From Bugula neritina (lineage: Eukaryota > Animalia > Bryozoa), in contig OZ037770.1 of NCBI GenBank assembly GCA_964035545.1, positions 3,504,662 to 3,568,661 of the forward strand: a stretch of DNA of 64,000 nucleotides, written 5' to 3'. Of the stretch, positions 15,547-39,894 are shown piece after piece (position 1 is the stretch's first letter; every line of letters begins with the position of its first letter). The notes below the pieces were generated by a model that was given only the letters and a program-made list of their open reading frames with translations, was not told the origin of the DNA and did not search any database. Position numbers and translations under genes: made by a program.

Positions 15547-17418
15547 TTAAGGGTTGTTCTTTCTATTAAACCCATCGAAGCCAGGAAAAAGGTAAAGTAT
15601 TTTACCATAAGGAAGAGTATTCCAGATTACAATCAAACTTCCGTTTCTCTCTGAATCTTCATCTGCATAGAGTTTCTTCACTAGTTTAGTCTGTACCTGT
15701 AGAGTAAGTAATGACTAGTAAGATTGTTTATCAATTCACTATTATAGCTGAGACAAGACGTAAAACTAAAAATGTTATTAAAACTAAAGTAGATATTTTT
15801 TTTCAGAGGACAAAAGGATTCAAACATAGAAATGAATAGAATGATATGATGAGAAATAATATTTTGATTTCTTAAATAAAAATTGAAATAGCAAAAAAAA
15901 TTTTGATTTTTAAACATGCCTGCTGGAAGATGGTGTAGAGATCACGGTGACAGGCATGTTTGTAGATTGAAGATACTAGGGCTCTAATCATAGGAGATCC
16001 ATACTTAAGATGTCTTTTTGATGCTAAAATAAAAGTATATGTTGCAGCTCAAAGCATATGGTGTAGACAGAGCAAGCTTAAAATTGTGTTGAGTTTTTTT
16101 TCTGTTTTTAGCATTAGCACGCAATATGGTTAGTACACGGAAAAGCTTACATAACATAGTCAAATTAACTTTAGAAAACAGGCAACAAACTTTTACATTG
16201 ACAAAAAACTGTAGTTGCACACTACTAATAAATAACTATCTCTTGTTATACTTACAGCAGACGTTACTCTTTAGAACAAGAAGATCATCTATATCTCGTA
16301 AAGTTCTACACTCTTCTATTCTAGGTTCTGGTGGTGAGACAGGTCTGATTGGTCTTATCACACTGGGTGTTTCAGGATATACAATATCATCATTAGCTTC
16401 AGAATGTGTAGAAGAGACAGCTTCAGTTTCTTCTTCTTGAGCTGCTGCAAGACTTGATCTGTCTGGACTCACCTCAATGTCTGCTGTGAGACAAACATTG
16501 CAAATATCTTAACTTTGTGAACTAAACAATCTCGAGACACCTAGTTGCTCAAGCATCAAAACTGTGAATCAAGTTAAAGTGTATATTGATTAGATGACTG
16601 GTCTCTGACAGGAAGTCTTCACTAGTTTAACCATTGAACTAAAAGTTCCAGTTTATACTACAAAACAACTACCTCCATTGCTGGCTTCTAGGATGACAAC
16701 TTTAGGTTTTCTCTTCATTCCATCGAAATACAAAGGAGTAAGTAAATCATGAAGTTCAGTGAGGTTGACCTTCTTAAGGTCAGTTCCATAGATGCAATTA
16801 TCTTCCCCACCATGAGTCATGACAACCAGCATATGACATCCCAAGTCTCTGTGTGTTTCTTTTTTCACCTCAGTCTTCACAGTAGACAGCATTTCCTACA
16901 AATTTGAAAATATGTATATAACCAACATAATAAATTCACTTTATTTCAAGTTTCCAAATGACTGTGATTTATGCAATGCAAACAAAAACTTTTCACATGA
17001 ATCTATCTATCGAAAGACCAAACAGTGAAAAAAAAACCAACAAGCTCCAGAAATTTTGATGCAGTTGTAGAGATATTCTAAGAACAATAAAAAAAAACAT
17101 AATTTAATGGATGTAAAAAATAATTTTATTTTGCTAAAATATTTTACATGCTTCAAAAATATTTGATTAAAGGACAATAAACATTATATATGAAAATTTA
17201 CTTGATGGTCAAATAGTGTTCGCATTACCTTCACCATAACAACATACCTCTGCCTTTAGGTCTGTGTGTGTCTCAACATCAAACTGAAGAGATTTCAACA
17301 TGACAGACATATTCTCAACATCAGCATCTGAACCTTCCCTGCATAAGTCTGGTCTTTCAACAAAGTTCTTATTGTTTATTATCAAAGCTCTTCCTCTCTT
17401 TCCGGTCATACTGAACAC
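15547..17418 (-). CDS. Caspase (peptidase C14A) domain, 5 exons, catalytic Cys replaced by Ser
   Basis: p20: VFSMTGKRGRALIINNKNF..REGSDAD..FDVETHTDL, LVVMTHG, IYGTD, MKRKPKVVILEASNG. p10: DDLLVLKS, SKRHLKYGSPMIRAL, NTLPYGKILYLFPGF. Stop at 15547-15549. Confidence 0.88.
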
Positions 17419-20400
17419 CTGGATATAAATATAGTTAGAGTATCACATACAGTAGTGACACACATGAGCCAAAGTTGAGAGTACATAGATAGTGGCATAG
17501 TTTTAAAATAAATAGTAATAGTTAATTCAGATCTCAAGATGCCATATATGATGCCTCCAATTTCTAGGTCTGACAAAAAGCAGCAAAACACTCTGTTAGT
17601 TGCAAAATCAACTTTATATCTTTATGCTTAGTTTTAGGCTTGTTACTTTTTAGGTTAGGTGAACTAAGCAAACTCTTGTTTAAGAGACCAGTTGTCATTT
17701 TTTCCAACAAAACATGTAAGTAGTCAACTAGGCATGCTGGTTGTTTTTACAAAAGTCATTCAGGATATTATTGAGGTTACTGCATGATTCTACTTCATTG
17801 GAAATAGCTTATATTTAACGTTAAGTTTTTACAAACCAAGCATGTATTTGCAAGGCTGTAGAAGTAAATAAAAACAATTTATTGCTATAATAAAATTTCT
17901 TTGCATATAACACTTTACTGGCCCAAAATAGACTATGGTCTATTTTATGCAATCAAAGTTTCTAAGACCATCTGCAAAACATTTACCTAACTTACAAATA
18001 CAGTTGATCGAAATAGAAAATTATGGTAAATTCAACTTCAAGCTAAAAGGTCAGAAAAGAAATTATAATATAAAATGTTTGCCCCACTAGGATTACTCTA
18101 TGACCATAGGAGTTACTGGGAAATCCCAATCCTTCATTCTAAGCAATTCTTTTGAACTCGATTTACAACTCCTTCAGTCTTCAGGTTCTCTTAGCTTCTC
18201 ACCTCCTTAGAAGCACTGCTACTGCTACTACTACTCTTTACAAAAGGTTAAAAGAGCCCACAAAAATGCCTCTCCCGACGAGAATTCAAATGGCAGAAGT
18301 CCAGCTTTCGAGCATGCAAGGCAGGATAAACATTACACCACAAGGACGAAGAAGTAATCTCTACACAAAAGATGCTTTCTAATCATGACAAGCAATTGAA
18401 CCCTAAACTAATAAAAGCAGAGCAGAAACTGTTATGGTGAAACCAAAACGTATAAGTATAGTAAAATGATGGAATTTGAAAATCTGCATGCCTTCAGATC
18501 AATTGATTTTTAAATCTAATTGAACTGCACATGACAATCTCAGTAAAAGAAGTTTTTAGAGACCGAAGTAGTCTACTGGGTGGAGAAAGGAGAGCTGCTA
18601 TAACTTGTGTTCATCAACTGATACGTTCACCTTGTCAGTGTTTGAGAAAAGTTGTTTTATCCTTGGGTTGGTTGTTGGCTTTAGTTCAAGTTGTACCAAC
18701 TTCATGTCTTTCTCATTCTCTTCATCAGGGTACAGATTGTCATCATCTTCAGAGAGATCACTCAGATTATCATCATCAAATTCATCTGCAGTCATATGGT
18801 TAGACAGATTATCGTCAACATTTGAAATCGTAGACTGCGTATCTCGCCTAGTCAACAGAAGCTGAAGCAAATAATTTTAAAAGAAACAATTAGACATGAT
18901 TTGCAGATAATTGTAAGGCAAAATTTGCAAAGCCTATTATTTTACTAATAATGTGGGTTTGAAAATTTAGTCCTGTCTAAAAATTTTACCATTTGATTTG
19001 TTCTGCTCTCTTCGAACTTTGAGCTCAGAAAGAAACTTCTTCAATTGATTTGTTTCTGCTTCAGACAAAGTCTCACCTGAGCAAAACAGACATAATTAGT
19101 AACATTAAAACTGGATGAGAGGCATTAGAAAAATATGAGACATAATCAAAAGCTCATGTATCAAGTTTATACTTTATAAGTCAGCCTAGAAGTTCAATAG
19201 AGTAGCTGTGTAGTTTGCTAATGTCCATCTAGCTGCTATTAAAATTTATCAATGCATGAAAAAACAGTAAATACTATTTAAAAACATTTGGGCAAACCAA
19301 TCAAAATTGAATCATAGTTGTAAACATACATGGATGAATTAGAGCACTGGGTATTTCTTCATCGTTACACAATATCTTTGAAGATCCATGACACTTCTTG
19401 ACATTTGGTGGCAGTTGGTTTTTTGGAGAACGGAGACACCATTTAGGATGCAAAAGCTTTTTAGGGCAAGAAACCCCCAGTAGCATGCAGTGAGCACAGA
19501 TGCAGGCAGTAACTGGTCGACTAGCAGTCCAAGTTCCCATCACATGTCTGAGAATGTTGTTTGTGGCTGAAATGAGTTTTTCCCACATCCTTGGAATGTG
19601 AGGAGCATCGGATGACACATAGAGTAAGACTCTTCTAGATTCATAATCATGTGTCAGCTGTGTGTATGTCTCATCTTGATAGACATTAGCTCCATTTCTC
19701 TTCACCTTCATTGTAGCAAACTCTTTAGAAAACAGTTCTAGCAAACCAACTGTCATTTGATGGTAGACATGCTGCGGTAAAGCCAGGCCCTTAAACTTTA
19801 TCTCAGTGTGAAGGGCCATTTCCTTTGGTGAGGTGTATGACACACCTTGATGTTCCTTAGCAAACTGAGGGATGATGAAGTACGATTCATGGACATCATT
19901 TTCCAGAGGGCCATACAACAAACGGAATGTTTTAAGCAAGCAAACAGCAGTTTCAACATCATGGGAGCTTTTGAATAATGTTTCCTTTGCGATCAAATAT
20001 GTTAGAAGAGATTTCATCATCAAGCCCGTTGTTTTGAAGCAATTCACAGACTCTTCAAACTCTTCTGTTTCAATTCTCAACCCTTCTTCGGAAATGCATG
20101 ATTGGAAGTGATCAACTCTTTTCTGCCAGATCTCTGGGTCATGATGATACAAGACACAGAGTAGTTTGGTAACTTCCGTGATCTTCTGAAATATGTATGG
20201 TTTGAGTGCTTCAATATTCTTATACCACAAGACTTTACCGCAGTCGTGCATGTATGTGAGAATAGTATCTAGCTGATGTGGCTCAACCTCAATACCTTCT
20301 TTTCTCAATTCTAGCAGAATAAATGAAAAAGAGCTGAAAGCTCTGGTTAAAGACAAAACTTTCTCATTCACTTCTTCCCAGATCAGTGGCAAAAGCTTAA

Positions 20401-23400
20401 CAAAGTGCTGACTACTTAGAAGGAGCGAGCTCTTTATCATTTCAAACTCAACATACTTGTCATCCTTTCCAATCTCATAAACATCTTCACTGGCAAAAAC
20501 CTTTCCATTTGATGAATTGAAATGCTGAATTTTCGAAAAATCTCCATCTGAACTTTTCTCTTCATCAAGAACCTCTTTGCACAGCTGTTCAGATACTTCA
20601 AGAAAGTTTTCTTTAAGCTGTTGGAAGTGTTGACTCTGAAACTTATCCTTGTGTGTGAAGACAAGCTTAGGTGGGCCAAGAGTAGGATGGGCGAGATAGA
20701 GGTGAGACATAAAGTCAAAGGCTAACTTTCTGACAGCCTCTTTGTTTGTAAACTCATTTGAAATCTGGTCATACTGCTCCATGTTGACAACAATTACCGG
20801 TACACAATTCTGTCTCAGTGTTAAATGGTATGTGATATGATAGACCTCCTGGCCTCCCATGTCTATGAGACGAAGAGTTGTACCATCCACCTCCACCTCT
20901 TCCACCTTAACCCTTACGCGATCAATGGACCATATATGTCCCTCAAAGCGACACTATCCACAGATCAATGGACCATATATGGTCTTTTAGGTAAACAAAC
21001 AATAGCGCTTACTTTAAACTTCCAGTTTTCAACCGAACAGCCTAAAAGTTTTTGTAATTGATGCTGATACTGTAGCTTGGTAATTTTGGGATAATTATAG
21101 CCAATAAATTTGATTAAATTAATAGCTACCAAGCCAGCTAGTTGCTTTTCAATTTAATCCTTAAATTTCAAAATTATCGGTAAATTTTAACGCTACTTTC
21201 AAATGCAAGAAATTGCTGTCAAATTATAGAGAGCCAGTTTATTTTATTTAAATACCATTTAGAAGAACATCTAAATAAACAGAAATGTTAAAGTCACTAT
21301 ATTTTGAATCATATTATAAATTAATTTTTTCATTTTGAGTTTTCAATTTTAAAATGGCGGTTCTGAGAGGTCAAATTTAAATGACTGATTTTAGCTAGAA
21401 TTAAGGTCTCCCTTCGCTTTAAGAAGCTTTTTATAATAGAAAACACTCTTAAAATTATAATAACCAGTTTATTTAGGGCCAAAATCAAGTGTAACTTTTA
21501 ATAATGAAATTGAAAGTTATGCAAAATTTGCTAGCAAAATTCGCGATAAACTCAAACGAGGCATAAAATTACGTAACTTCAAAGTTGATCGCGAAAGGGT
21601 TAAACACTTTTGTGGTCTCATCATACTCTGCATTCGAACTTCTGTCAGTCAGAACTCTCCTCCTGTCAGTGCTCTGTAATGTTCTGATTAGACTGGTTTT
21701 ACCTGCCATTGTGTTCCCCAACACCACTATTGTAGCAAATGGCAGATTTCTACCAGCACCCTTAACCAAATCTGTGTAGTATTGTCGCACAGCATCTAAT
21801 CCTCTTTCACAAACTTCTAGTGGAGGAGATGTAAGAGCATTGCAATCATCTGTATCCAGTCTGTGAAGACGTGTTAGCTGTAGTATCTCAGGGTTCAAGG
21901 ATGTCATGGATCTGTTGTCGGATATATTCAGTGTGTGCAGATTACTCACCGTGCACACTGAAGATGGGAGACTGGTGAATTTATTGGAAGATATGTCAAG
22001 TATCTGTAATTTTTGTAGATTCTGTATCCTAATAATACATTACATTCATATTATCAGCACATACTAGATGTGAGTGAGATCTAATTATAGCTGTCATAAA
22101 TCTACAATGATAGTGAAGCAATTATACACAGAATTTGGACGTATGAAGTGGCAATGGCTACAGTGACCTTATAATATAAAACCCTTTAAAGTAGTATGGG
22201 ATATAATTGTAATTCTAGAATTTTCATTTATTGATATTCTCACAATTATCAAGTGCTATTTTTGATATTTTAAATCATTTACAAAACTACAATTACAATG
22301 AATTGGTAAAAGATATTAAAAAAGTAATTTAGTGTCACAATTCATAATGCTTCCATAGACAATGTTGTTTTATATAACATGTAGTTGAGTATAACTGCTT
22401 AGACTGATATTTTATTAGATATGTGTAGTATATATATTATAAATATGTACCATGTATAATACAGTTATAATCAAACTATATAGAGGCAAAGTTATTATAT
22501 ATGAGTCTGCATGAAGTATTACAGAAAGTATGCCAGGGAAAAACACAATTCTCAGCATTACACTTTAACAAACAATGCTAAGAAATACACATTAATATTT
22601 GTTGAACAGAAAGTTCAATTTTTATCAATTTTGCTATATGATGAACTACAAGTTCAGGGTACCCTTTTACTATCTTGCAGGGATATTACGTGTGCATTCT
22701 TTAAAAGAAAGTTTTGTAATTTAAAAAGGAGAGCAAATCATTGAACATGTTATAGATATGAACAACTTGTCATGTATATACCATTTCTAGCTTTACATAG
22801 GAGAGGTATGAACACCATAATGTAGTTTAACTGTGTTGACTATTCTGCTGAAAAAAATGTTTTAAATGTGACACACAAACCTCTCAGGTAGAGTAGATAG
22901 TTTACATCTCCTCATATTCAACTCTTTAAGTGATGTGAGAGATGACACAACTTCTGGTATTGTGTTGAGAGAAGTACCTCCTATGTCTAGTTTCTCTAAC
23001 TGAGTCAGCTGACACAGACTGTAATATAAAGTGTATGATATATGTAGTCTGCATAACTATAGTATTTTATACTATATACACATTTTGTTTTCAACCAGGT
23101 AAAATTATATACAACTTAACTACCAAGCGACTGATTGTAGCATTGTACATGCAAAGCATGAAGAAATATCAGTTCATTATAATAATGTGAAAGTATAAAA
23201 TTATTAAACTCAGTGAATGCTAATAAACTAAAAATAACTGCTGACTATTCACTAAATTTTATAGCGCAAGAATATATAATGGCCTATCTTAAAATTATGT
23301 TATTTCCACCATATATACAAACTACTACATATATATAAATTCCTTTAAAAAAGTACATTTCATGTTGCAGAGCATGAGAAGTTAACAGTTTATTACAATA

Positions 23401-26400
23401 GTATACAAGTATTCAATTATTATATATACTCAGTGTGTGAATACTAACCAACTATACAACTGCTTACTATTATTTACATTTTATAGCACAAGAATATATA
23501 ATGGCATACCTTAAATTATGTTGCTTTTTCAATATTACAGTCTATATTTCATATAAAATTAAAAAAAAATTGCATTTCACATATTTTTCAATTAAATAAT
23601 GACAAGCCCTAGTTTTACTTGGTAGGAAACTCTTTTATGATTTCAAGTATTAAATTCTTTAAACAATACAAAAACTGTGACAAACAAACCTCTCAGGTAG
23701 AGTAGATAATTTACAGTCCCACATATTCAACTCTTTAAGTGATGAAAGTGATGACACAACCTCTGGTACTGTGTAGAGAGGATTCCCTCCTATGTTTAGT
23801 TTCTCTAACTGAGTCAGCTGGCACAGACTATAAACATACAGTGTTTGATATATATTTTAGTTTTACTTATACAGAGTACAATTACTAGAGTTGCTATAAC
23901 TACCACATGATTATGAAGGATAAAAAACTATACTATCAATTTATTCCTTCATAACAGATCTATATAATGTAACATACTATCATAACGCTGGACTGCTAAG
24001 TAAAAATATAACAGTTTATTATAATAGTACACAAGTATTTATTTTTAAACTCAGTGAATACTAATAAACTAGAAATTATTGCTTACTAATAATTACACTT
24101 TTATAGCACAACAGTATATAATGGCATATAACCTTAAAATTGTGTTATTCCCACAATATTATAAACCATTGCATATATATATGTGTGTAACTTCAAAACA
24201 TTGCATTTCACATTTTTCCAATTATTTTTCAATTATACAATGGCATACCATATAATTACACTTGGTAAGCATATAAAGTTGTCAAATATTAAATGTTTCA
24301 AACAATACAAAAACTGTGACAAACAAACCTCTCAGGTAGAGTAGATAATTCACATATCCTCATATCCAACTCTTTAAGTGATGTGAGTGATGACACAACT
24401 CCTGGTACTGTGTTGAGAGGATTGGACCCTATGTCTAGTTTCTCTAACTGAGTCAGCTGACACAGACTGTAATATAAAGTGTATGATATATATGTAGTCT
24501 GTATTACTATAATATTTTATACTATATTCACATATTGTTTTCAACCAGGTGAAACTATATACAACTTAACTACCAAGCAACTTATTAAGTAGCATTGTAC
24601 ATGCAGAGCATGAGAAGTTAACAGTTTATTATAATAGTATACAAGTATCCAATTATTATATATACTCAGTGCATGAATACTAATAAACTATACAACTGCT
24701 TACTATTATTTAAATGTTCATAGCACAAGAATATATAATGACATATACCTTAAAATTTCACTATTTTCCCAATATTACAGACCATATTTCATATAGAATT
24801 CAAAAAAATTGCATTTTACATATTTTTCAATTGTATAATGACATGCCCTAATTACACTTGGTAAGAAACTATTTTATGATTTCAAGTCTCAAATGTTTCA
24901 AAAAACACAAAATCTGGGACAAACAAACCTTTCAGGTAGATGAGATAATTTACAGTTCCACATATTCAACTTTTTAAGTGATGTGAGTGATGACACAACT
25001 TCTGGTACTGTGTTGAGAGGATTCCATCTTATGTTTAGTTTCTCTAACTGAGTCAGCTGACACAGACTATAAACATACAGTGTTTGATATATTTAGTTTC
25101 ACTTATACAGAGTACAATTACTAGAGTTGCTATAACTACCACATGATTATGAGTGATAAAAAACTATACTATCAATTTATTTCTTCATAACAGATCTATA
25201 TAATGTAACATACTACCATAACGCTTGACTACTAGGTAAAAATATAACAGTTTATTATAATAGTACACAAGTATTTATTTTTAAACTCAGTGAACACTAA
25301 TAAACTAGAAATTATTGCATACTATTAATTACATTTTTATAGCACAACAATATATAATGGCATATAACTTTAAAATTGTGTTTTTCCCACAATATTATAA
25401 ACCATTGCATATATATATATGTGTAACTTCAAAACACTGCATTTCATATTTTTCAATTATACAATGGTACACCATAATAACACTTGTTATGCATATAAAG
25501 TTGTCAAATATTGAATGTTTTAAACAATACAAAAATATTGTGACACAAACCTCTCAGGTAGAATAGATAATTTACAGTTCCCCATATCCAACTCTTTAAG
25601 TGTTGTGAGTGAAAACACAACTTCTGGTACTGTGTTGAGAGTATTCCAACCTATGTCTAGTTTCTCTAACTGAGTCAGCTGACACAGACTGTAATATAAA
25701 GTGTATGATATATGTAGTCCTCATTACTATAATATTTTATACTTTATTCACATTTTGTTTTCAACCAGGTAAAACTATATACAACTTAGCTACCAAGCAA
25801 CTTATTGCAGCATTGTACATGCAGAGCATGAGAAGTTGACAGTTTATTATAATAGTATACAAGTATTCAATTATTATATACACTCAGTGTGTGAATACTA
25901 ATCAATTATACAACTGCTTACTATTATTTACATTTTTATAGCACAAGAATATATTATAATGGCATACCTCAAATTATGTTATTTTCACAATACTACAGAC
26001 CATATTTCATATAGAATTAATAAATTGCATTTCACATATTTTTCAATTATATAATGACATAACCTAACAATACTTGGTAAGAAATTATTTTATAATTTCA
26101 AGTATTAAGTGTTTCAAACAATACAAAAACTGTGACAAACAAACCTCTTAGGGAGAGTAGATAATTCACAGTTCCCCATATTCAACTCTTTAAGTGATGT
26201 GAGTGATGACACAACTTCTGGTACTGTGTTGAGAGGATTCCATCTTATGTTTAGTTTCTCTAACTGAGTCAGCTGACACAGACTATAAACATACAGTGTT
26301 TGATATATTTAGTTTCACTTATACAGAGTACAATTACTAGAGTTGCTATAACTACCACATGATTATGAGTGATAAAAAACTATACTATCAATTTATTTCT

Positions 26401-29400
26401 TCATAACAGATCTATATAATGTAACATACTACCATAACGCTTGACTACTAGGTAAAAATATAACAGTTTATTATAATAGTACACAAGTATTTATTTTTAA
26501 ACTCAGTGAACACTAATAAACTAGAAATTATTGCATACTATTAATTACATTTTTATAGCACAACAATATATAATGGCATATAACTTTAAAATTGTGTTTT
26601 TCCCACAATATTATAAACCATTGCATATATATATATGTGTAACTTCAAAACACTGCATTTCATATTTTTCAATTATACAATGGTACACCATAATAACACT
26701 TGTTATGCATATAAAGTTGTCAAATATTGAATGTTTTAAACAATACAAAAATATTGTGACACAAACCTCTCAGGTAGAATAGATAATTTACAGTTCCCCA
26801 TATCCAACTCTTTAAGTGTTGTGAGTGAAAACACAACTTCTGGTACTGTGTTGAGAGTATTCCAACCTATGTCTAGTTTCTCTAACTGAGTCAGCTGACA
26901 CAGACTGTAATATAAAGTGTATGATATATGTAGTCCTCATTACTATAATATTTTATACTTTATTCACATTTTGTTTTCAACCAGGTAAAACTATATACAA
27001 CTTAGCTACCAAGCAACTTATTGCAGCATTGTACATGCAGAGCATGAGAAGTTGACAGTTTATTATAATAGTATACAAGTATTCAATTATTATATACACT
27101 CAGTGTGTGAATACTAATCAATTATACAACTGCTTACTATTATTTACATTTTTATAGCACAAGAATATATTATAATGGCATACCTCAAATTATGTTATTT
27201 TCACAATACTACAGACCATATTTCATATAGAATTAATAAATTGCATTTCACATATTTTTCAATTATATAATGACATAACCTAACAATACTTGGTAAGAAA
27301 TTATTTTATAATTTCAAGTATTAAGTGTTTCAAACAATACAAAAACTGTGACAAACAAACCTCTTAGGGAGAGTAGATAATTCACAGTTCCCCATATTCA
27401 ACTCTTTAAGTGATGTGAGTGATGACACAACTTCTGGTACTGTGTTGAGAGGAATCGATCCTATGTATAATTTCTCTAACTGAGTCAACTGACATAGGCT
27501 ATAAACATACAGTGTTTGATATATTTAGTTTTACTTATACAGAGTACAATTACTAGAGTTACTATAGCTACCACATGATTATGAGAGATAAAAAATTATG
27601 CTATCAATTTATCCCTTCATAACAGATCTATATAATGTAACATACTATCATAACGCTTGACTACAATATAGGTAAAAATATAACAGTTTATTATAATAGT
27701 ACACAAGTATTTATAATTTAAAACTCAATGAACACTAATAAACTAGAAATTATTGCTTACTAATAATTACATTTTCATAGCACAGCAATATATAATGGCA
27801 TTTAACCTTAAAATTGTGTTATTCCCACAATATTATAAACCATTGCATATATTTGTGTAACTTCAATACATTGCATTTCATATTTTTCAATTATATAATA
27901 AATGACATACCGTAATAACACTTGGTATAAGCATATAAAGATGTCAATTATTGAAGGTTTCAAACAATAAAAAGAATTAGCAATACAAACCTCTCAGGTA
28001 GAGTAGATAATTTACAGCCCCCCATTTGCAACTCTTTAAGTAATGTGAATGATGACACAACTTCTGGCACTGTGTTGAGAGGATTATATGCTATGCCTAG
28101 CGTCTCTAACTGAGTCAGCTGACATAGACTGTAATATAAAGTGTATGATATATATGTAGTCTGCATTACTATAATATTTTATACTTTATTCACATTTTGT
28201 TTTCAACCAGGTAAAACTATATACAACTTAACTACCAAGCAACTTATTGCAGCATTGTACATGCAGAGCATGAGAAGTTAACAGTTTATTATAATAGTAT
28301 ACAAGTATTTATAATTTAAAACTCAATGAACACTAATAAACTAGAAATTATTGCTTACTAATAATTACATTTTCATAGCACAGCAATATATAATGGCATT
28401 TAACCTTAAAATTGTGTTATTCCCACAATATTATAAACCATTGCATATATTTGTGTAACTTCAATACATTGCATTTCATATTTTTCAATTATATAATAAA
28501 TGACATACCGTAATAACACTTGGTATAAGCATATAAAGATGTCAATTATTGAAGGTTTCAAACAATAAAAAGAATTAGCAATACAAACCTCTCAGGTAGA
28601 GTAGATAATTTACAGCCCCCCATTTGCAACTCTTTAAGTAATGTGAATGATGACACAACTTCTGGCACTGTGTTGAGAGGATTATATGCTATGCCTAGCG
28701 TCTCTAACTGAGTCAGCTGACATAGACTGTAATATAAAGTGTATGATATATATGTAGTCTGCATTACTATAATATTTTATACTTTATTCACATTTTGTTT
28801 TCAACCAGGTAAAACTATATACAACTTAACTACCAAGCAACTTATTGCAGCATTGTACATGCAGAGCATGAGAAGTTAACAGTTTATTATAATAGTATAC
28901 AAGTATTCAATTATTATATATACTCAGTGTGTGAATACTAATCAACTATACAACTGCTTACTATTATTTACATTTTATAGCACAAGAATATATAATGGCA
29001 TACCTTAAATTATGTTGTTTTTACAATATTACAGTCTATATTTCATATAAAATTCAAAAAAAATTGCATTTCACATATTTTTCAATTATATAATGACAAG
29101 CCCTAGTTTTACTTGGTAGGAAACTCTTTTATGATTTCAAGTATTAAATTCTTTAAACAATACAAAAACTGTGACAAACAAACCTCTCAGGTAGAGTAGA
29201 TAATTTACAGTCCCACATATTCAACTCTTTAAGTGATGTGAGTGATGATACAACTACTGGTACTGTGTTGAGAGGATTCCCTCCTATGTATAGTTTCTCT
29301 AACTGAGTCAGCTGGCACAGACTATAAACATACAGTGTTTGATATATATTTTAGTTTTACTTATACAGAGTACAATTACTAGAGTTGCTATAACTACCAC

Positions 29401-32085
29401 ATGATTATGAGGGAGAAAAAACTATACTATCAATTTATTTCTTCATAACAGATCTATATAATGTAACATACTATCATAGCGCTGGACTGCTAAGTAAAAA
29501 TATAACAGTTTATTATAATAGTACACAAGTATTTATTTTTAAACTCAGTCAATACTAATAAACTAGAAATTATTGCTTACTAATAATTACACTTTTATAG
29601 CACAACAATATATAATGGCATATAACCTTAAAATTGTGTTATTCCCACAATACTATAAACCATTGCATATATATGTGTAACTTCAAAACATTGCATTTCA
29701 CATTTTTCCAATTATTTTTCAATTATACAATGGCATACCATAATAACACCTGGTAAGCATATAAAGTTGTCAAATATTATTTGTTCCAAACAATACAAAA
29801 ACTGTGATAAACAAACCTCTCAGGTAGAGTAGATAATTCACAGCTCCACATATACAACTCTTCAAGTGATGTGAGTGATGACACAACTTCTGGTACTGTG
29901 TAGAGAGGATTCCCTCCTATGCCTAGTTTCTCTAACTGAGTCAGCTGACACAGACTGTAATATAAAATGTATGATATATATGAGTCTGCATTACTATAAT
30001 ATTTTATACAATATCCGCACTTTGTTTTCAACCAGGTAAAACTATATACAACTTAACTACCAAGAAACTTATTGTAGCATTGTACATGCAGAGCATGAGA
30101 AGTTAACAGTTTATTACAATAGTATACAGGTATTCAATTATTATATATACTCAGTGTGTGAATACTAACCAACTATACAACTGCTTACTATTATTTACAT
30201 TTTTATAACACAAGAATATATAATGGCATAAATACCTTAAATTATGTTGTTTTCACAATATTACAGACCATATTTCATATGGAATTAAAAAAAATTGCAT
30301 TTCACATATTTTTCAATTATATAATGACATGCCCTAATTATACTTGGTAATAAGAAACTATTTTATGATTTCAAGTAATAAATGTTTCAAACAATACAAA
30401 ACCTGTGACAAACAAACCTCCCAGGTAGAGTAGAAAATTTACAGCTCCTCATATCCAACTGTTTAAGTGATGTGAGTGATGACACAACTTCTGGTACTGT
30501 GTTGAAAGGATTATCTTCTATGTGTAGTTTCTCTAACTGAGTCAGCTGACATAAACTGTAATATAAAGTGTATGATATATATGTAGTCTGCATTACCATA
30601 ACATTTTATACTATATTCACATTTTGTTTTCAACCAGGTAAAACTATATACAACTCAACTACCAAGCAACTTATTGTAACATTGTACATGCAGAGCATGA
30701 GAAGTTAACAGTTTATTATAATAGTATACAAGTATTCAATTATTATATATACTCAGTTTGTGAATACTAATCAACTATACAACTGCTTACTATTATTTAC
30801 ATTTTATAGCACAAGAATATATAATGGCATACCTTAAATTTTGTTATTTTCACAATATTACAGACCATATTTCATAAAGAATTAAAAAAATTGCATTTCA
30901 CAGATTTTTCAATTATATAATGACATAACCTAATTATACTTGATAAGGAACTATTTTATGATTTCGAGTATTAAATGTTTCAAACAATACAAAACTGTGA
31001 CAAACAAACCTTTCAGGTAGAGTAGATAATTCACAGCCTTCCATATTCAACTCTTCAAGTGATGTGAGTGATGACACAACTTCTAGTGCTGTGTTGAGAC
31101 GATTCCATCTTATGTCTAGTTTCTCTAACTGAGTCAGCTGACATAAACTGTAATATAAAGTGTGTAATATATGTAGTCTACTGTATCATATATATAATAA
31201 TATAATCTGTACTCAGCTATAATGTAAATTATGGAGCAAACAATTTTGTTGAAACAGGGTACAGCAAAAAAAAGCTATTATGCCATGTTATACGTGTAAT
31301 GGGTGCCCTGTGTAGAATTGAGTGATTAGATGTACATGTATAAAGACATCCTGTAAGTTTAATAGATAAGGGGTACATCTACAATGTAATGCGAGTATAT
31401 AGTATGATTTATAATAATAAATGGTTTACTTTGTTATAGCTAATCCGACACAAATTAGCATGTATTTAATATTCCGAAAATATTTTATTTTTAAGTATAT
31501 ATGGCTACATATAATATGCTTATAATATATTATGTGTTGCAGATAAACACCTTCTGTATAATCCTACATGTATACATGTACTGCAATAATATGTTACTTC
31601 TGTATTCAACTACATAAAACATGTTTTAATTTATGATAGCGTGTGTAACACTACAGTTTCCCACTGTCTAATTTCTACAACTCGTTCAGCTGGTAGAGAT
31701 ACAATGTTATACATATTACTATAGCTTTATATAGTGCATGATTACATCATGAGTATAAGAATGTACTTCAGCATTGACCCAGATACATGCATCGTGGGTG
31801 ATAATTACCACAACTAAACTCATTTAACATTTACACAGCTATCATAATAGACACTCACTTGTCTAGACTTGCTCTGTCAGTCAGGTGAGAAACACGTAGA
31901 CGCAGGGCTTTACCAGCAATCTCTCCAATGTTGTTTGGAATTCTCCCTTCCAGTTTCAGATCTCTGATGCAATTTCTCCCAACTTCATGTTTCACCTCAG
32001 CAGCAGTATATGACTTGGTATTAGCTTTCCATACATCCCACCAGTCTACAGGAGGCTGACCAGAATGTCTGAACCAGATTCTCAT
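15547..32085 (-). CDS. LRR-Roc-COR (Roco, MFHAS1-like) protein with C-terminal caspase-like module; this copy is disrupted by a piggyBac insertion and a +1 frame break
   Basis: Exons in transcript order: 31859-32085; 14 LRR exons; 21604-22028 joined to 19330-20910 (TE removed); 18990-19076; 18631-18861; 17248-17418; 16673-16895; 16256-16483; 15920-16023; 15547-15696. Intron phases are compatible except at 18990/18861. About 1785 aa if repaired, or 1421 aa to the TAG at 18848-18850. Confidence 0.8.
19330..22028 (-). CDS. Final LRRs + Roc GTPase + COR exon (interrupted by TE at 20911-21599)
   Basis: G1 GNTMAGKTS, G2 ETT, G3 DMGGQ, G4 THKD. COR motifs LTYMHDCGKVLWY, LLKTFRLLY, YFIIPQF. LRR cap LTSPPLEVCERGLDAVRQYY. 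Confidence 0.9.
20911..21599. mobile_element. Non-autonomous piggyBac-type element (689 bp)
   Basis: TTAA TSDs at 20907-20910 and 21600-21603. TIRs CCCTTACGCGATCAA / CCCTTTCGCGATCAA (14/15). Subterminal direct repeat GATCAATGGACCATATATG. Precise removal restores ETTKVFKVEEVEVDG. Confidence 0.92.
22881..31147 (-). repeat. Tandem array of 14 LRR exons (138 nt, 46 aa, phase 2/2) within about 600-bp exon+intron units
   Basis: Exons: 22881-23018, 23690-23827, 24329-24466, 24929-25066, 25551-25688, 26145-26282, 26767-26904, 27361-27498, 27991-28128, 28589-28726, 29184-29321, 29817-29954, 30418-30555, 31010-31147. All are open with AG/GTTTGT boundaries. Consensus SLCQLTQLEKLxIxxNPLNTVPEVVSSLTSLKELxMxxCxLSTLPE. 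Confidence 0.95.
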
Positions 32086-32814
32086 ACTCTCTGTAACATC
32101 ATACAATGACAGTTTAATTATTACACAGTGTTAGCAGGTGATGTCTGTCATTCTGAAACCTGTCACATATATCTATTATTTGCTGCATGTGTGTCAGTCA
32201 CCATAGCTATATATAGACATATCTGACTACTTTAGGTTTATGAAAGTAAAATCTGCAAATTTAAAATGATCTCTATTTTTTTAAAAACAACTGCTTTGTG
32301 TAAAAACTTTGAAATTATGCTGCTTCAGTTTCAATGAAGATCTTTTTAAATAATGTTGACATATATTAAAAATTATATAAATATATTAATACATTTTAAA
32401 ATTGTTGTATTCTTACCTTCGTATGATGATGTGAACGTTGCAGTCAATGACAAGTACGTTACTAGTAGTAAAATAAGAATTTAAAAGTATTTCTATGGCT
32501 GGCCAGCCGAAACCTAAACTTGACTTCTAACATTCGAAATCTCGCTTCTGCCCCGCTGGGGGTATATCCGGTGTGACATTGTAACACTAAACACAACATC
32601 CTCCCTCTCAACAAAGAACGGTGATAACCCGTGTAAAATAAACGTAACATCCTTTACCAGTAATATGACAGTAACAGTGAAGATGAACATGGAAAGAAAT
32701 AAAATAAAAAGTAACATATATGTGTAGAATCTCCAAAGAAGACAGGACAATAAGAGCTAACTGACTGAGTGTAGTAAAACAAACTATGTACAAAGTAAGG
32801 AGTATCAAAGCCTC

Positions 32815-35800
32815 CTAGTTCATATCAAAATCTTTAAATCTTGATGGAAGCACCCCTCTACTGGACCTAACACCTCGCCTACCGATAGGGGGGACAACAC
32901 TGCGAGTTGGGGTAACTGCTTTAACTTCCTGGTCTGACACAACTGGTGTTGGAAGATTGGGGTTTGGTAGCTCTTCAGTATCCGTTGGGCTAGAAGAGTC
33001 CAGCTCGGAACTAGGACGAACAATCGTGTTATTGGGTTTCAAATGAACTCGATTTCTCCTTAGGAGTCGAGACCCATTATCAACGAGGTATGACCTCGGT
33101 GCACCATGATGTCCAACCACACATCCAGGTGTCCAGATCTTTTCTGGACCAGCTCTCATAAATACTTCAGAGCCTAGGGGTAAATTGGGTAGTTCCTTTG
33201 TCCGCTGATCGTAATATGCTTTAGCTGTCTGTTGTCTTGCTTTGAGAGCACCAGTGGAATTTACTGTACTTGGAGTCAGGAATGCGGTAGTCGTCGGGAG
33301 TCCAGTTCTCAAATTCCTGCTGAAAAGCATCTCTGCTGGACTATATAGACAACCACTCAGTGGTGTCTCTCTGTAGACTAGTAGAGAGTGATACACATCA
33401 ACCTGAGACTGTTCACACTTCCTTAAAAACTGCTTCACAGTCTGAACATACCGTTCAGCAAGACCATTTGACTGATGATGGTGTGGACTGGAGGTAACAA
33501 TATCAAAACACCAATCCTTACCAAACTGTTTCATCACATGACTTGTAAAGGGCATATTGTCCGCCATAATGGATTTGGGCACGCCATGAATTGAAAATAT
33601 GGATTTCAGGGCCATGACAACATGTTCTGCAGTTTTTCCACCTAATAAACGTAGTTCGGGAAAGTGTGACATGCAGTCAACTACTAACAAGTAGTCCTGA
33701 CCGCGAAACTGCATTATATCCATGGCTACAGTGTACCACGGCAATGTGGGCGTGTCATGAGGCATAAGTGGCTCCTTTGACTGCCTGTTCGCAAACATAG
33801 CACACTCACTGCACAGGCTAACCTTTGAATAGATGTCCTGATTCAGTCCCGGCCAACACAGTTGGTTTAAGGTCATACTTTTCATTTTCTGGCTCTTTGC
33901 CAGGTGCTTTATGTTCTATATGAACAATGTTCCACTGATAGCTCGAACAGGTTGAATGTCACAGGAACAAAAAAAATATGAAAAGATAAAGAAATTTATG
34001 TTCTCCAATATACTTTTTTATTTTTTTCAAAAGCCAATTCATGTTTAAGTTATAGCTTGTTGAAAAACACAGTCCCCCTTCCACATTCTTTTCAATTTAT
34101 ACGCTCCTGACTTGTTATTGTGTCTCAATATGCCTTGTATTTGAGTGCTTGTTAGTCTCGCTTCACTAACTTTGCCTATACTTCACAAGTGCCAGTGCTG
34201 CTGGCTCAAAAGCTAAATGTTATAAACTGTCAGCTAAAACCCAATCTTGTATTCCTAGGTTGGTTGGCCTAAATAAAACAATAGTCAAATCATGATTTCA
34301 TGTTTTAAAAATTTACTCTATTCTAACCTGCTGCCTAGCTAGTTCTATTTTTGATGTATAATTACAAAATTTGTGATACATTTTTTTGGCAACCATGTGA
34401 TTTATAAAATGCAGTAATGGTACTTATAATATTATATTATTATCATTATAATATATTATATAGTATTATGTGTGTTTTTATTATACTGCATAATATCTAT
34501 TTTATTATTGTTGTTGTGCAAACAAGTGCAATTAACCTAGTTTTCAAAATGTACCTCTAAATTATCAGAATATCAGTTTAGATATTTTCATGCTTTGTAA
34601 GGTAAACCTAAAAAAAGAGGCTGTATTCCCAAAGTAAAGGGTGTTGAACTATGAACTATATTAGATTAGCCACTCTGCTACCAAGTGCGTCAGTATAATA
34701 TTATATGAATAGCTCTGATGCTTTGTCTCCGGTGGCTGGCTGCGATATGATAACTTGGCCAACTTCCAAGAGTTTAAAATTGGCGCAATTATTCAAGAGG
34801 TTACATACTGCACAGAGCTAGCAGTGATAGTAACCTTGCTATTGGCAGTACTTATTACAACTGCCAGCATATAAGCTGCATTGTAGAATGCCGTTGGGGT
34901 AGGCTATTAAAACCAAATTCTGCTCTCTAATATACCTAAGACACAATGCAGCAACATAATTGTTCATTTCAAATTACATTGCCACCCTTACATGAGCTGT
35001 GGGCTTCATAAAGATTCATATGATTAGAGATTTATGCTATAGGCTAGCTATGATGAAAATAACACACCATTGTCAAAGTTAACTTCAAGTATGTTGTTTT
35101 CCAGAAACTCAGTAATGTCCATTTATCTCTCGCATACAAATACTTATGTAATAGCATACAGTTTAAGTTTTATTTTAAAGCACATCTGCAAACTCTACAA
35201 TAAGAGCTTGCTTCCAGTCTATTTCAGACCTGTTTTTGTAGCTAGTAATACGCAAGCTACTTATTTTTAAACTTTTGGGTTATTTGTTCAAAACCATTAG
35301 CTTTGCTAGTAACCCGAGACTATTGCAACAGTTGACTGCTATCAACATGAATTGACAGCCTAATAATTATAACCCGTTTGCGCGCGAAATATTTATGTAA
35401 TGATAGTGACTCATATAGTGAGCAACCCATTAACGATGACTGCGTGGTCTAGAGGTTAGAGGCGTCAGCGACGAGTTGGTTGGTCATGGTTCAACCCTGT
35501 TTTGTTGCAATTTTTTTTGTCAATTTATGCAAATCCTACGCATGTATAATAAATATGGCTATAAGTGTAAAGTTTTTTTTTTAACTTTTGTTCAACAGTA
35601 AGACAACATACATGCATAATAATTAGATACTGAACGCTGGACTAAACCTTAAATTGATCTTATAGAATACAATGTACTTAAAATAATCATATGTGAATTA
35701 GAGAAACTGAAAGTACACCTGCTGTGCTATAGACCTTTACTGACAAGACTGCAAAGTGAAGTGATTTAGCTGAAATTAACTCTGCCAAACAAACAAAGAA

Positions 35801-38752
35801 TTATGTTGTGCTAAGGCATTTTCAATATATTATTGTAACATAGTGAGATGATTCAGCTAAGTGCTAATGTAAAACAGGGAACATTATCTTGGCAGAAATC
35901 CAATAGATTGCCAATTTGTGCGAGAGGGTACTATATGTTATTGTGATAGCGCAGAGCGGCAAACGTACTAGGAATGTTATAATTAGTCACAGGAGCGTAG
36001 CTAGAACCACCATATGAAGAATTTAGAAAATTGCAGTGAAACTTGCAAAATGGTGTATGTTTTTACCAAATTGTGAAGAGCATAAACAGAATTTCAAAAA
36101 ACAAAGAAAGTATATTAGAGAAAACATATCAAGGAATGTCAAGTTTAACTTTTAGACTTTATAAAATGAATCCCCTGTGCTACAGCAGTGGAACATGGAG
36201 GGTATAAAATTTTACTTATTATGCAACAACTTTCTCAGAAAATTTTTTATTGAAAAATTAAAAAAGTATATGAAAGAGGAATGCAAGAGCTATCTTTTCA
36301 TGTAAAATTTGTTAATGTGAGACAAAAACTGTTCGAGCTATCCCCTGGAAACCGTTTATATATAACATAAAGCAGTGCTTGAATCTGGAAAGTAATGACC
36401 TTAAACTAACTGTGAATAAACAGACCTACGGGCTCGCTCTTTACACTTCTGTATTCCCAAATGTCCCTGGTGAATCTTGTTCAACATTTCTTTTCGTGCA
36501 CCAACCGGAACAACTAGGCGCTCACCTACGAAAAGAAAACCACCAGCTTCATATAGTTCATCTCTTACCAACCAATAGGGTTGTAGGTTGGCAGGTGCAT
36601 GACTACGATGCGTCCAGTCCCAACCCTCTTGGCACGCCTGCTTGAGATCCGACATTGTTGTGTCATCCGAATATGCCGTACTCAACCAGTCACTCATCTC
36701 ACTTGCAACCTCCAGCGAGTGAACCATCACTACTTCATCCTCCAGGTCAGCTTGGGTCGACGGAGTCTTAGTGCTATACGCTCTAGACAGAGTATCAGCA
36801 AGATAGAGATATTTCCCTGGGACATAGGTGACCTGGGCTACTTCATAACGTTGTAATCTCAGGAGCAGTCGTTGTAGCCGTGGAGATGCTTTATGTAAAG
36901 GTTTCTTCATTATGGATAACAAGGGACTGTGATCAGTCTGTAGTGCTATAGGACGACCATAAACATAGCTATGGAAGTACTCACAGCCAAAGACCATAGC
37001 TAGTAACTCTTTATCAATTTGGGGATAATTGATCTCAGCACTGGTCAGGGCCCGAGAGCCATAGGCTACAGGCCTACCCTGCTGTAGTAGCACAGCACCA
37101 AGCCCAGACTTTGAGGCATCTACTTGGAGATTTACCGGCTTGTTTACATCAAAGTACTTCAAAACACTGTCATTCATGAGAACACTTCTGATATTGGCCA
37201 TGGCTGATTGCTGTTCTGGACCCCAGAACCAATCCACATCCTTCTTCAAAAGGCATCTGAGAGGTTCAGTAATTGTGGACATATTCGGGATGTAGTTCCT
37301 AAGAAAGTTGACTGTGCCCAACAGCCGTTGTACACCATTTCTGTCTGTGGGTTCAGGCATGTCTGCAATAGCTGACACCTTGTTTGGGTCAGGCTTTAGA
37401 CCATCTACGGACACAATATGCCCAAGGTAGTTGACTTCTTGCCGATTAACTTGAATTTTTTCTTTGTTAAAACGCACATTGCACTCCCGGGCTCTCTGCA
37501 ATACTTTGTGGAGGTTATTGTCATGTTCCGCCTGCGTGCGACCGGCCACAATTAGGTCATCAAAGTATATGGAGACCGCTAGATCACCAAAAATCTGTTC
37601 GACACGTTTTTCGAACACTTCGGCAGATGAGTGAAGGCCAAATGGTAGTCTTTTATAGCAATATCTGCCAAATGGCGTGTTGAACGTAGTGAGAAGACTA
37701 CTTTCAGGGGATAGGCGGATATGCCAATAGCCATGCTTCATATCCAGAATAGTAAAGCGTTTCATGCCATTAAACCTGGTGGCAGCGGTATTTGTTTCGG
37801 CTCCTGTGTCAACTTTGAAAGAATTTCTTTCACTGTCCTTCAACTTGACATCCACAAACCACGACTTCTTAGCCTCGACTGTCTCTACCATTCCGATAAA
37901 CAAGGTTGAAAGATTTTTATCCAGCACTTCTTCTCCAGTCTCGACTCCAACGGCATGAACGAGCTTTTTTGGGCATCGTTTTTCAAAGTGATTTAAACCA
38001 TGACAACTGTTACACTTTTTGCCATATGCCGGACATTTGCCGTAGACATGTTCATACGAACAGAATCTGCATTTTATCTTCTTGTCAGTGGTAAGTCCAC
38101 CCTTGTGAATGGGTTTGTTGACAACAGTGGCAACCTGTCTCATCGCTAAACTAGACTTATCCCCATCAGCAATCAGGCTCAGCTGTGCTTCAGTCATCTC
38201 AGTAGCCCGAATATCCTCTACGGCTTTTTCTAAAGTCATCGTGTTGTCACGAAGTAATCTTTCCTTCAGCTTTACAGATGTCAAGCCAAAAACGATACGA
38301 CATAGCAACATCTTTGACTTCACACCCTCTGGAAAGTCACACCGCGATGCCTGTGACTTGAGTCGCTTTAAATATACATCTATAGGCTCACTTTCAGTCT
38401 GCGACATCGACCAGAACACAAACCACTCATAGAGCTCATTTTTTCTCGGGTTACAATATGTATCAAACATATCCAGTACATCACTTAGTACCGTCTTACT
38501 TTTCCCAGCTGGGGCCTCCAACTGTGAGAAAATCTCATTGGTCTCGTCGCCAGCAATATGCAGAAACATTGCTATCTGCCTCCGGGATATGGCTGCATTG
38601 CCGGCAGGTTCAGGGTCTGTGGGATTCGCTTTGGGAGTTAGAACTACATCAATAGCCATCAAATAATTTTCAAAATTTCTGCGGAATCGTTTCAAGTTCT
38701 CCGACACATTGCCCTCAAAACACATCCCAGAAGGCTGTCTGAGACCATCCAT
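32815..38752 (-). CDS. gag-pol polyprotein, split by the nested insertion and carrying an apparent in-frame PR/RT deletion
   Basis: ORFs 36401-38767 and 32815-33885 rejoin as KERARRSVY-WPGLNQDI once 33857-36414 and one TSD copy are removed. The protease FKVDTGAETN runs almost directly into RT FTILDMKHGYW. Confidence 0.85.
33857..36414. mobile_element. Non-autonomous CAC..GTG DNA transposon (CMC/EnSpm-like) nested in the integrase
   Basis: TIR CACAGTTGGTTTAAGGTCAT vs CACAGTTAGTTTAAGGTCAT (19/20), extending imperfectly to about 90 bp. 2-bp TSD AA. No transposase ORF. Confidence 0.85.
35437..35520 (+). mobile_element. tRNA-derived SINE-like remnant inside the DNA transposon
   Basis: Box A TGGTCTAGAGG, box B-like GGTTCAACCC, then a T-run. 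Confidence 0.45.
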
Positions 38753-39894
38753 GACTTTATCAAACAACGGACAAATTCACAAATAACAAAAGAAAACCAC
38801 CACAATACTAAACTCAAACTGCAACCATCAAAAGAGCCGCAAGTTCAACATAAAAAGAAAAAACAAACACAAAACTTCAGGCAGAACAACAGCAAGTATC
38901 AAACAAACAATTCAAATCACTGGAAGAGTAGAGAAAAGCCGTCAATGAATTGATTGCTCACAACCAGTGAATCATATAATCAGACTTAATCTGCAGCTGA
39001 AGTTAGTACGCGCTGCCACCATGTTGTATTCTTACCTTCGTATGATGATGTGAACGTTGCAGTCAATGACAAGTACGTTACTAGTAGTAAAATAAGAATT
39101 TAAAAGTATTTCTATGGCTGGCCAGCCGAAACCTAAACTTGACTTCTAACATTCGAAATCTCGCTTCTGCCCCGCTGGGGGTATATCCGGTGTGACATTG
39201 TAACACTAAACACAACAAAAATGATTTGAATTTAAAGCAGCCAAAAGACGCCAAATTATTATTTCATATCTATGCATGCACAAAAAAGGTACAAATAGCA
39301 ACATCAAGTTAAAACTTTTTATATCTGACACTGCATACTTCTTACCCTATGAGTCACACAGTCAATATTTACAGGATGATTCTAGAAATACATGGACTAG
39401 TATATAGCTAGAACACTTTCTGATAGTGAGATATATAAAGTTGATTATTTGAATGTTACTCATATGTTTACTATGGAAACAAGCAAACTACCACAGAAAA
39501 GTTTTTGAAAACTCATGTCCCAATAGTTAAAACATTTACTAGTTTTGCTAAAATGAAACTCACACCCATGCAGAGCTAAATTTGTTTAAACCTATATTCA
39601 TAGTAACAACCAGTAGATAACTTTGGTTGAAAGCAAAACTTGTAACTAAGTTTTTCATCAAAAATCTATCAAAACAACTCACCATCTGTTGCCATGGTTA
39701 CTAAAGATTTTACTGCTGATTTATTTCAATTCTGTACATCTAAAGGTTGGCAGCCCCATCTCTACAAAATGTACATGCAGATTCCTAAAAAAATGGCAGG
39801 TTTGAAAATAATAGATTAGCTGCAATATTTTTAACTGCCACTATTAAGCACTTTATACACAAATTTGTATAATAGTCAACAGTTATTTAACTAA

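Follow-up and report, generated by a model that had tools for sequence, protein, structure and literature searches.

The window analysed here is a stretch of 64,000 nucleotides (nt) from the bryozoan Bugula neritina (assembly GCA_964035545.1, contig OZ037770.1, positions 3,504,662 to 3,568,661). It contains, on the minus strand, an array of 14 short exons encoding leucine-rich repeats (LRRs), which are almost the same everywhere except at a handful of codons. Such a locus raises the question of how a set of exons can be kept so similar and, at the same time, so different at a few residues, and to what kind of protein it belongs. We think it quite likely that the array encodes, in the germline, the sensor arm of a protein in which LRRs, a Roc GTPase domain, a COR-like region and a caspase fold follow one another in one chain, and whose gene belongs to a clustered family with at least 81 members.

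An array of cassette exons

A repeat search of the window found 14 direct repeats of about 600 bp, with a spacing of 592-639 bp (809 bp for the final one), in a background of 27-30% GC. Tandem Repeats Finder is blank on the array because the period is greater than 500, and this other repeat search was therefore used. The exons are listed here in transcript order, with the four-residue strings that distinguish their first and second LRR (LRR-a/LRR-b); L010 is one of the paralogous loci sampled from the same genome.

22881..31147, minus strand: array of 14 cassette exons of 138 nt each, 28 LRRs in total, 13 introns
31147-31010, minus strand: exon 1, DIRW/NMEG, same sequence as one exon of paralogue L010
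30555-30418, minus strand: exon 2, HIED/DMRS, 1 mismatch to L010
29954-29817, minus strand: exon 3, GIGG/YMWS
29321-29184, minus strand: exon 4, YIGG/NMWD
28726-28589, minus strand: exon 5, GIAY/QMGG, identical to exon 6
28128-27991, minus strand: exon 6, GIAY/QMGG, identical to exon 5
27498-27361, minus strand: exon 7, YIGS/NMGN
26904-26767, minus strand: exon 8, DIGW/DMGN, identical to exon 10
26282-26145, minus strand: exon 9, NIRW/NMGN, chimera
25688-25551, minus strand: exon 10, DIGW/DMGN, identical to exon 8
25066-24929, minus strand: exon 11, NIRW/NMWN
24466-24329, minus strand: exon 12, DIGS/DMRI
23827-23690, minus strand: exon 13, NIGG/NMWD
23018-22881, minus strand: exon 14, DIGG/NMRR

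The original prediction, made from the letters of the window, had placed 14 exons of 138 nt, in phase 2/2, at these positions. Our analysis recovered exactly these exons, on the minus strand and flanked by AG and GT, together with all 14 LRR-a and all 14 LRR-b strings letter for letter. All of the exons are open, and each is preceded by a pyrimidine-rich tract and AG and followed by a donor of the GTTTGT type. The first base of each exon is the third base of a codon and its terminal AG provides the first two bases of the next one. The 46 codons of an exon make two 23-residue LRRs, of which LRR-a has an Asn-type motif and LRR-b a Cys-type motif.

The introns are also repeated. They are 454-501 nt long, except for the last one (671 nt), and fall into two types, A (introns 1, 2, 4, 7, 9, 11 and 13) and B (introns 3, 6, 8, 10 and 12), with intron 5 being a hybrid. 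The two types differ from each other at about 30% of positions, while introns inside a type differ at 0-11%. Whole exon+intron units were thus duplicated, partly as double units of 1216 bp.

Position of the hypervariable residues

A comparison of the 14 exons shows no variation at 21 of the 45 residues. Counting the junction codon as 0, the variable codons are 11, 13 and 14 in LRR-a and 34, 36 and 37 in LRR-b, each of them with 4-6 different residues, and they correspond to positions 5, 7 and 8 of the motif LxxLxLxxN/C in each repeat. The same analysis was extended to the family by sampling 20 paralogous stretches of 10 kb, which gave, with the window, 21 loci and 155 cassette exons, 138 of them unique. 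Among these unique exons codon 39 (position 10 of LRR-b) is hypervariable too, and the seven codons carry 8-16 different residues, mostly D, N, Y, H, G, W, R, S, E and K, while the remaining codons, a framework of about 39, are near-fixed.

In the established architecture of LRR proteins, positions 5, 7 and 8 occupy the beta-strand and the following loop, on the concave side. The exon aligns in register with solved structures of 23-residue LRRs, namely SHOC2, LRRD1, Leptospira LIC and the variable lymphocyte receptors (VLRs), and the register of SHOC2, LRRD1 and LIC provides the structural frame in which the three positions can be placed. Hypervariability had been described for the x positions of LxLxxN/C, as residues of the concave face. 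Not every position of this face varies: motif positions 2-3 (E-K and K-E) are conserved, so that variation is limited to a part of the residues classically regarded as exposed. The scarcity of synonymous changes noticed at the outset is borne out by a low synonymous divergence (dS 0.145) and by the many four-fold codons that are unchanged in all 14 exons.

Evidence for diversifying selection

The Nei-Gojobori method (NG86), applied to the 12 unique exons of the array, gave a dN of 0.59 at the six codons and of 0.063 elsewhere, to be compared with the above dS, which refers to the exon. Site models were then evaluated for the window array. The log-likelihood was -653.3 for M1a and -632.8 for M2a (likelihood ratio test (LRT) 41.1, p 1e-9), and the selected class, with an omega2 of 8.7 on 12% of sites, was made of exactly codons 11, 13, 14, 34, 36 and 37; the original prediction had expected omega above 1 at about six sites. 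M2a was significantly better than M1a in all eight paralogous arrays tested (LRT 8.6-83), where the same sites recur, although these arrays share history and are not independent of each other. Other features of the codon tests also count against this part of our interpretation: the models are our own implementation of GY94 on an IQ-TREE topology and not those of PAML, the sequences are short, the trees are poorly resolved, and recombination can inflate LRTs. In view of the poor trees, the recombination and the shared history, more weight was given to tree-free tests, based on diversity and on introns.

Among the 138 unique exons, synonymous diversity (piS) was 0.124, while non-synonymous diversity (piN) was 0.29-0.62 at the seven codons, that is 2.3-5 times piS; at the codons outside the seven it was at most 1.3 times piS. 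The introns offered a second yardstick. In 19 pairs of units having flanks of the same type, the 18 hypervariable bases differ by 35% and the other exon bases by 6.1%, with 4.8% in the upstream 200 nt and 8.9% in the downstream intron sequence. Hypervariable codons have thus diverged 4-7 times as much as the introns flanking them, suggesting that they are not merely unconstrained, since neutral sites cannot outrun the neutral rate.

We also evaluated how the changes are distributed inside the hypervariable codons. Variation is 0.46 at the first codon position, 0.27 at the second and 0.15 at the third; all base changes are present, and no deaminase-like bias is seen. Variant codons are non-synonymous or synonymous in a ratio of 98:4 at the hypervariable codons and of 109:45 elsewhere (Fisher p 9e-8). 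A mutational hotspot was considered and rejected as unlikely, because change falls with codon position and because of the 98:4 ratio. Both the tree-based site models and the tree-free tests (piN/piS, introns, codon position and codon counts) agree with the diversifying selection that had been proposed for this array, and our sequence comparisons support such selection on the codons of the predicted binding face. The pattern may be due to a fast turnover of these codons, or to old differences that are protected while conversion homogenises the rest; both amount to selection for diversity.

Duplication and exchange of exons

One trace of shuffling in the array is the following.

24973..27453, no strand assigned: perfect tandem duplication of 1216 bp, 2.04 copies, with ends inside exons 11, 9 and 7

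It appears as an exact run of 1265 nt at an offset of 1216 (24973-26237 = 26189-27453). Because its ends fall inside exons, exon 9 has its 5' half in common with exon 11 and its 3' half with exon 7, the distance between exon 9 and its source halves being 0, and exons 8 and 10 are identical. A further exact run, of 607 nt at an offset of 598 (27703-28309 = 28301-28907), accounts for the identity of exons 5 and 6. Half-exon exchange is not limited to this array: family-wide, exon halves assort nearly independently (half-distance correlation 0.05), and in 15 exon pairs one half is identical while the other is at least six changes apart. Non-hypervariable distance is 0.067 within arrays versus 0.069 between them.

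Exchange seems to reach distant loci. Exon 1, intron 1 and exon 2, together 730 bp, have a single mismatch to L010, which lies 670 kb away, in a pairwise alignment of window positions 28956-32402 with L010:1662-5094. This near-perfect tract is embedded in flanks of 88-97% identity, pointing to a recent tract of conversion or exchange between paralogues. A BLAST search for long blocks of at least 95% identity shared with the sampled paralogues found none; the 730-bp tract emerged only from the pairwise alignment. Germline shuffling, which the original prediction had listed among its possibilities, is thus supported at sequence level by apparent chimeric exons, perfect unit duplications and a putative inter-paralogue conversion tract.

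The gene around the array

The gene that contains the array is LRR-Roc-COR-caspase-like. Its other parts, and a miniature inverted-repeat transposable element (MITE) inserted in it, are located as follows.

31859..32085, minus strand: first coding exon, with an acceptor, a conserved ATG at 32085, a 75-codon N-terminal cap and a phase-2 donor
21600..22028, minus strand: start of the last LRR/Roc exon, opened by a phase-2 acceptor (22028) and encoding three non-cassette LRRs together with the P-loop GNTMAGKTS
20911..21599, no strand assigned: piggyBac-type MITE of 689 bp with a TTAA target-site duplication, inside the Roc exon
19301..20910, minus strand: remaining part of Roc (switch II DMGGQ) and COR-like region, the limits being those of the open reading frame (ORF)
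16653..17418, minus strand: caspase fold (Peptidase_C14, PF00656) in two exons, E 4e-10 and 1e-7

Both the P-loop and switch II of Roc can be read in the ORFs, in a domain that is split here by the MITE, and PF08477 (Roc) is carried by homologues at 38-92% identity. The match to the COR-A profile is weak (19 bits, E 0.0013, below the cut-off of 35.3 bits), and PF16095 (COR-A) is carried by more distant homologues (P0033, P0035 and P0037). The 28 cassette LRRs and the terminal LRRs lie N-terminal of Roc, in the same frame and phase. At the other end of the gene, the TTACAG acceptor, the ATG and the GTGAGT donor of the first coding exon are conserved in an alignment with 15 paralogues. This exon is 87.7% identical to that of L010, against 91.5-95.6% in the flanking non-coding DNA, and it may evolve fast too.

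The two closest paralogues, L021 and L022, both have the caspase pentapeptide EASSG, without cysteine, and a contig from a related species has EACSE, with THGG present in all; the sites compared are window 16653-16892, L021:991-1227, L022:3413-3649 and L024:5001-5228. The terminal inverted repeats of the MITE start with CCCTTTCGCGATCAA, and its family has more than 112 candidate copies in the genome, with an identity of 91-96%. Just upstream of the first coding exon, at 32815-38767 on the minus strand, are long ORFs similar to those of Ty3/gypsy retrotransposons (integrase, reverse transcriptase/RNase H and gag-like), and further retroelement-like ORFs occur at 11-14 kb and 40-44 kb of the window.

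Origin and possible role of the array

In the explanation that we favor, the sequence comparisons show an arm that lengthens and changes through tandem duplication of exon+intron units of about 600 bp, that acquires chimeric exons by unequal crossing-over within exons, and that exchanges sequence with paralogues hundreds of kilobases distant. They also show that selection for amino-acid diversity drives, or keeps apart, 6-7 codons per exon, the framework being near-constant. The hypervariable residues would line the concave beta-sheet and the ascending loop, forming a long, variable ligand-binding surface of about 90 residues over the 28 repeats. The Roc-COR GTPase switch would then pass the signal of a bound ligand on to the caspase-fold domain, in the manner of immune or self/non-self receptors similar to the NOD-like receptors (NLRs). 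Diversity would be generated in the germline, across exons and paralogues, and not inside an individual.

Several further points weigh against this explanation. If conversion keeps the introns and the framework alike, codons that are old and protected could look fast. The hypervariable residues are assigned to the concave face by the canonical LRR register and not by a model of the protein; an AlphaFold prediction of a single exon, from a 12-row alignment, gave spurious helices with a mean confidence (pLDDT) of 54 and was discarded as meaningless. Expression and exon usage of the array are predictions from the genome sequence, and the perfect duplications are likewise read from its assembly. 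The caspase fold keeps the histidine (THGG), but it has the pentapeptide EASNG and not the QACxG of the catalytic His-Cys dyad, and the MITE contributes an in-frame stop to the Roc exon. An immune or allorecognition role is only what we infer.

A different view would be that diversity is produced inside the animal. Cells could skip different subsets of exons and obtain many receptor isoforms from one gene, and the exons had indeed been described as freely skippable. Arithmetically this is right, since no choice of exons would break the frame, and the first and last exons, both phase 2, would join to any of them; moreover, all cassette exons share the same AG|GTTTGT-type donor, and LRR exons are reported to be alternatively spliced in the ROCO genes of brown algae (PMC11378527). 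However, a symmetric phase is the necessary result of a tandem exon duplication that keeps the frame and is not, on its own, evidence of skipping, and intact sites and open frames in all 14 exons are equally expected if every exon is constitutively included. The protein libraries searched yielded no spliced protein from the same species, and the Roc of this copy holds the stop-bearing MITE. We regard combinatorial splicing as unlikely. Alternatively, cassettes could be rearranged in somatic cells, as in VLRs, or their binding-face codons mutated there, as by a hypermutation-like process. The near-identical units, with many donor-like exons nearby, would suit such a process, and the same idea has been raised for brown algae (PMC3341825). 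But the gene is already complete in the germline, in frame and with splice sites, unlike the incomplete germline VLR; the observed diversity sits in an assembled germline-type genome; and the hypervariable codons have neither a deaminase-like spectrum nor elevated synonymous sites. We find somatic diversification extremely unlikely, and for both processes the prior expectation is also low. That the arrays are used combinatorially within an individual or a colony by either route, regulated exon skipping or somatic rearrangement, is correspondingly improbable; if it were true, a colonial invertebrate would have an individually variable repertoire of intracellular LRR-GTPase-protease receptors for immunity or for colony self/non-self recognition.

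The remaining objections concern selection itself and the state of this copy. The x positions might simply be unconstrained, with the rest of the exon kept alike by concerted evolution or by a recent burst, so that the contrast would be an ordinary effect of the LRR consensus. It is general among LRR proteins that x positions are more variable than the framework, the overall omega is about 0.8-1.2, and the nearly equal non-hypervariable distances within and between arrays (0.067 and 0.069) indicate strong homogenisation. On the other hand, the hypervariable codons exceed both the introns of the same unit pairs (4-7 times) and piS (2.3-5 times), the excess is found only at positions that change the amino acid, and other exposed x positions, at motif positions 2-3 and on the convex side, are conserved; an explanation that dispenses with positive selection is therefore very unlikely in our view. 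A stronger case can be made that the array is a relic of a recently dead family member, and that it records history and not present function. The MITE splits the Roc exon and adds the in-frame stop, it is missing from the two closest paralogues (L021 and L022), it differs by 2.0% from the consensus of 15 copies of its family, and the open frame has 550 amino acids in this copy versus 681-694 in the paralogues. This copy may make no full-length protein, given the transposon inside its Roc exon, and could represent either an insertion allele or a pseudogene of recent origin. The 14 cassette exons are nevertheless intact, with their splice sites, and so are the remaining exons. This is a weak argument, as the lack of stops in 1.9 kb is not unlikely at 2% of neutral change. 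The insertion might also be polymorphic, or be removed by splicing. We consider death of this copy a serious possibility, though we lean somewhat towards its not being dead; its death would be compatible with the germline-encoded sensor arm proposed for the family.

Comparison with known repeat receptors

The closest published analogue is the LRR-ROCO family of brown algae. In Ectocarpus and Saccharina the LRRs of these genes are encoded singly, by phase-2 exons of 72 nt arranged in tandem (Zambounis et al. 2012, PMC3341825; Teng et al. 2024, PMC11378527), and positive selection has been detected with the PAML models M2/M8 at about four concave sites per repeat (PMC3341825; PMC11378527). The two families have in common the order LRR-Roc-COR (COR-like in Bugula), the short, near-identical phase-2 exons in tandem arrays, exon shuffling and duplication within and between loci, gene clusters with pseudogenes, and LRR exons whose concave-face sites are positively selected. 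They differ because in Bugula, an animal, a 138-nt exon encodes two LRRs and not one, the C-terminus carries a fused caspase fold, the introns are co-duplicated in two alternating types, and no opposite-strand exons were seen in the window. Common descent of the exon design seems unlikely.

A similar evolutionary mode, that is, concerted repeats with selected binding-surface positions, is found in fungal NLRs (HNWD and other STAND proteins). Their WD, ANK and TPR repeats are more than 85% identical internally, vary in number, evolve in concert with exchange within and between paralogues, and are under positive selection at 3-5 positions of the binding surface per repeat (Dyrka et al. 2014, PMC4986451). 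These proteins, however, have no LRRs, carry NACHT or NB-ARC and not Roc-COR, and their repeats are not separate exons.

The VLRs of lampreys and hagfish, to whose structures the exon aligns at E ~1e-8, share with the array the LRR scaffold, the invariant framework, the hypervariable concave positions and the cassette-like units. The germline VLR gene, however, is incomplete and is filled in somatic cells with cassettes that flank it, and its products are extracellular and without GTPase or caspase. The Bugula array, in contrast, is complete in the germline, in frame and provided with splice sites. Among animal LRR-Roc-COR proteins (MFHAS1/MASL1-like, with expansions in amphioxus) we found the best LRR matches to the exon, with 48% identity and up to 29 repeats; they also have Roc and COR followed by a variable effector domain, though in amphioxus the effectors are OTU or glycosyltransferase (GT4-conflict) domains. 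For these animal proteins no report of exon-cassette hypervariability was present in the literature searched. SHOC2, LRRD1 and Leptospira LIC belong to the same 23-residue LRR class, in the same register (E 1e-18 to 3e-28), but are single-copy scaffolds without hypervariable cassettes.

More generally, animal arrays of this kind were not described in any paper of a literature search of incomplete coverage. A functional family would be an animal counterpart of the receptor evolution described in brown-alga LRR-ROCO proteins and fungal NLRs, with the same mode in which an invariant repeat scaffold stays recombination-competent while a few binding-face residues diversify, a GTPase switch and a caspase fold being here part of the same chain as the scaffold. 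Invertebrate immunity, or the allorecognition of a colonial animal, would then gain a further class of receptors. The arrays are a clean natural experiment in which concerted evolution can be studied together with diversifying selection.

The family in the genome and in a related species

The family is clustered. Counting the Roc-COR ORF across the 216-Mb genome gave at least 81 scored matches (113 candidates), and about 30 matches are on the same contig as the window, between 2.5 and 6.3 Mb. For the 138-nt exon, more than 351 candidate copies were found, with an identity of 88-100%. Protein libraries searched with one exon gave no spliced protein from the same species and only distant LRR-Roc-COR proteins, at 48% identity or less (amphioxus), and a search with the exon alignment matched only four distant metagenome loci.

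Relatives of the Roc-COR-caspase part are present on two metagenome contigs of the Joint Genome Institute (JGI; L024 and L025, sample 3300002729). Their Roc-COR is 81-92% identical, and no LRR array was found on these contigs. At the nucleotide level they are 87-89% identical to their best match in the Bugula genome; they come from a related species, which thus has the same family.

One of the sampled paralogues has a different spacing. At L003:3097-3490 and L003:4490-4883, cassette exons are only 256 nt apart from start to start, with a short intron of about 118 nt versus the usual ~450 nt, and this pair is present twice within a higher-order repeat of 1393 bp.

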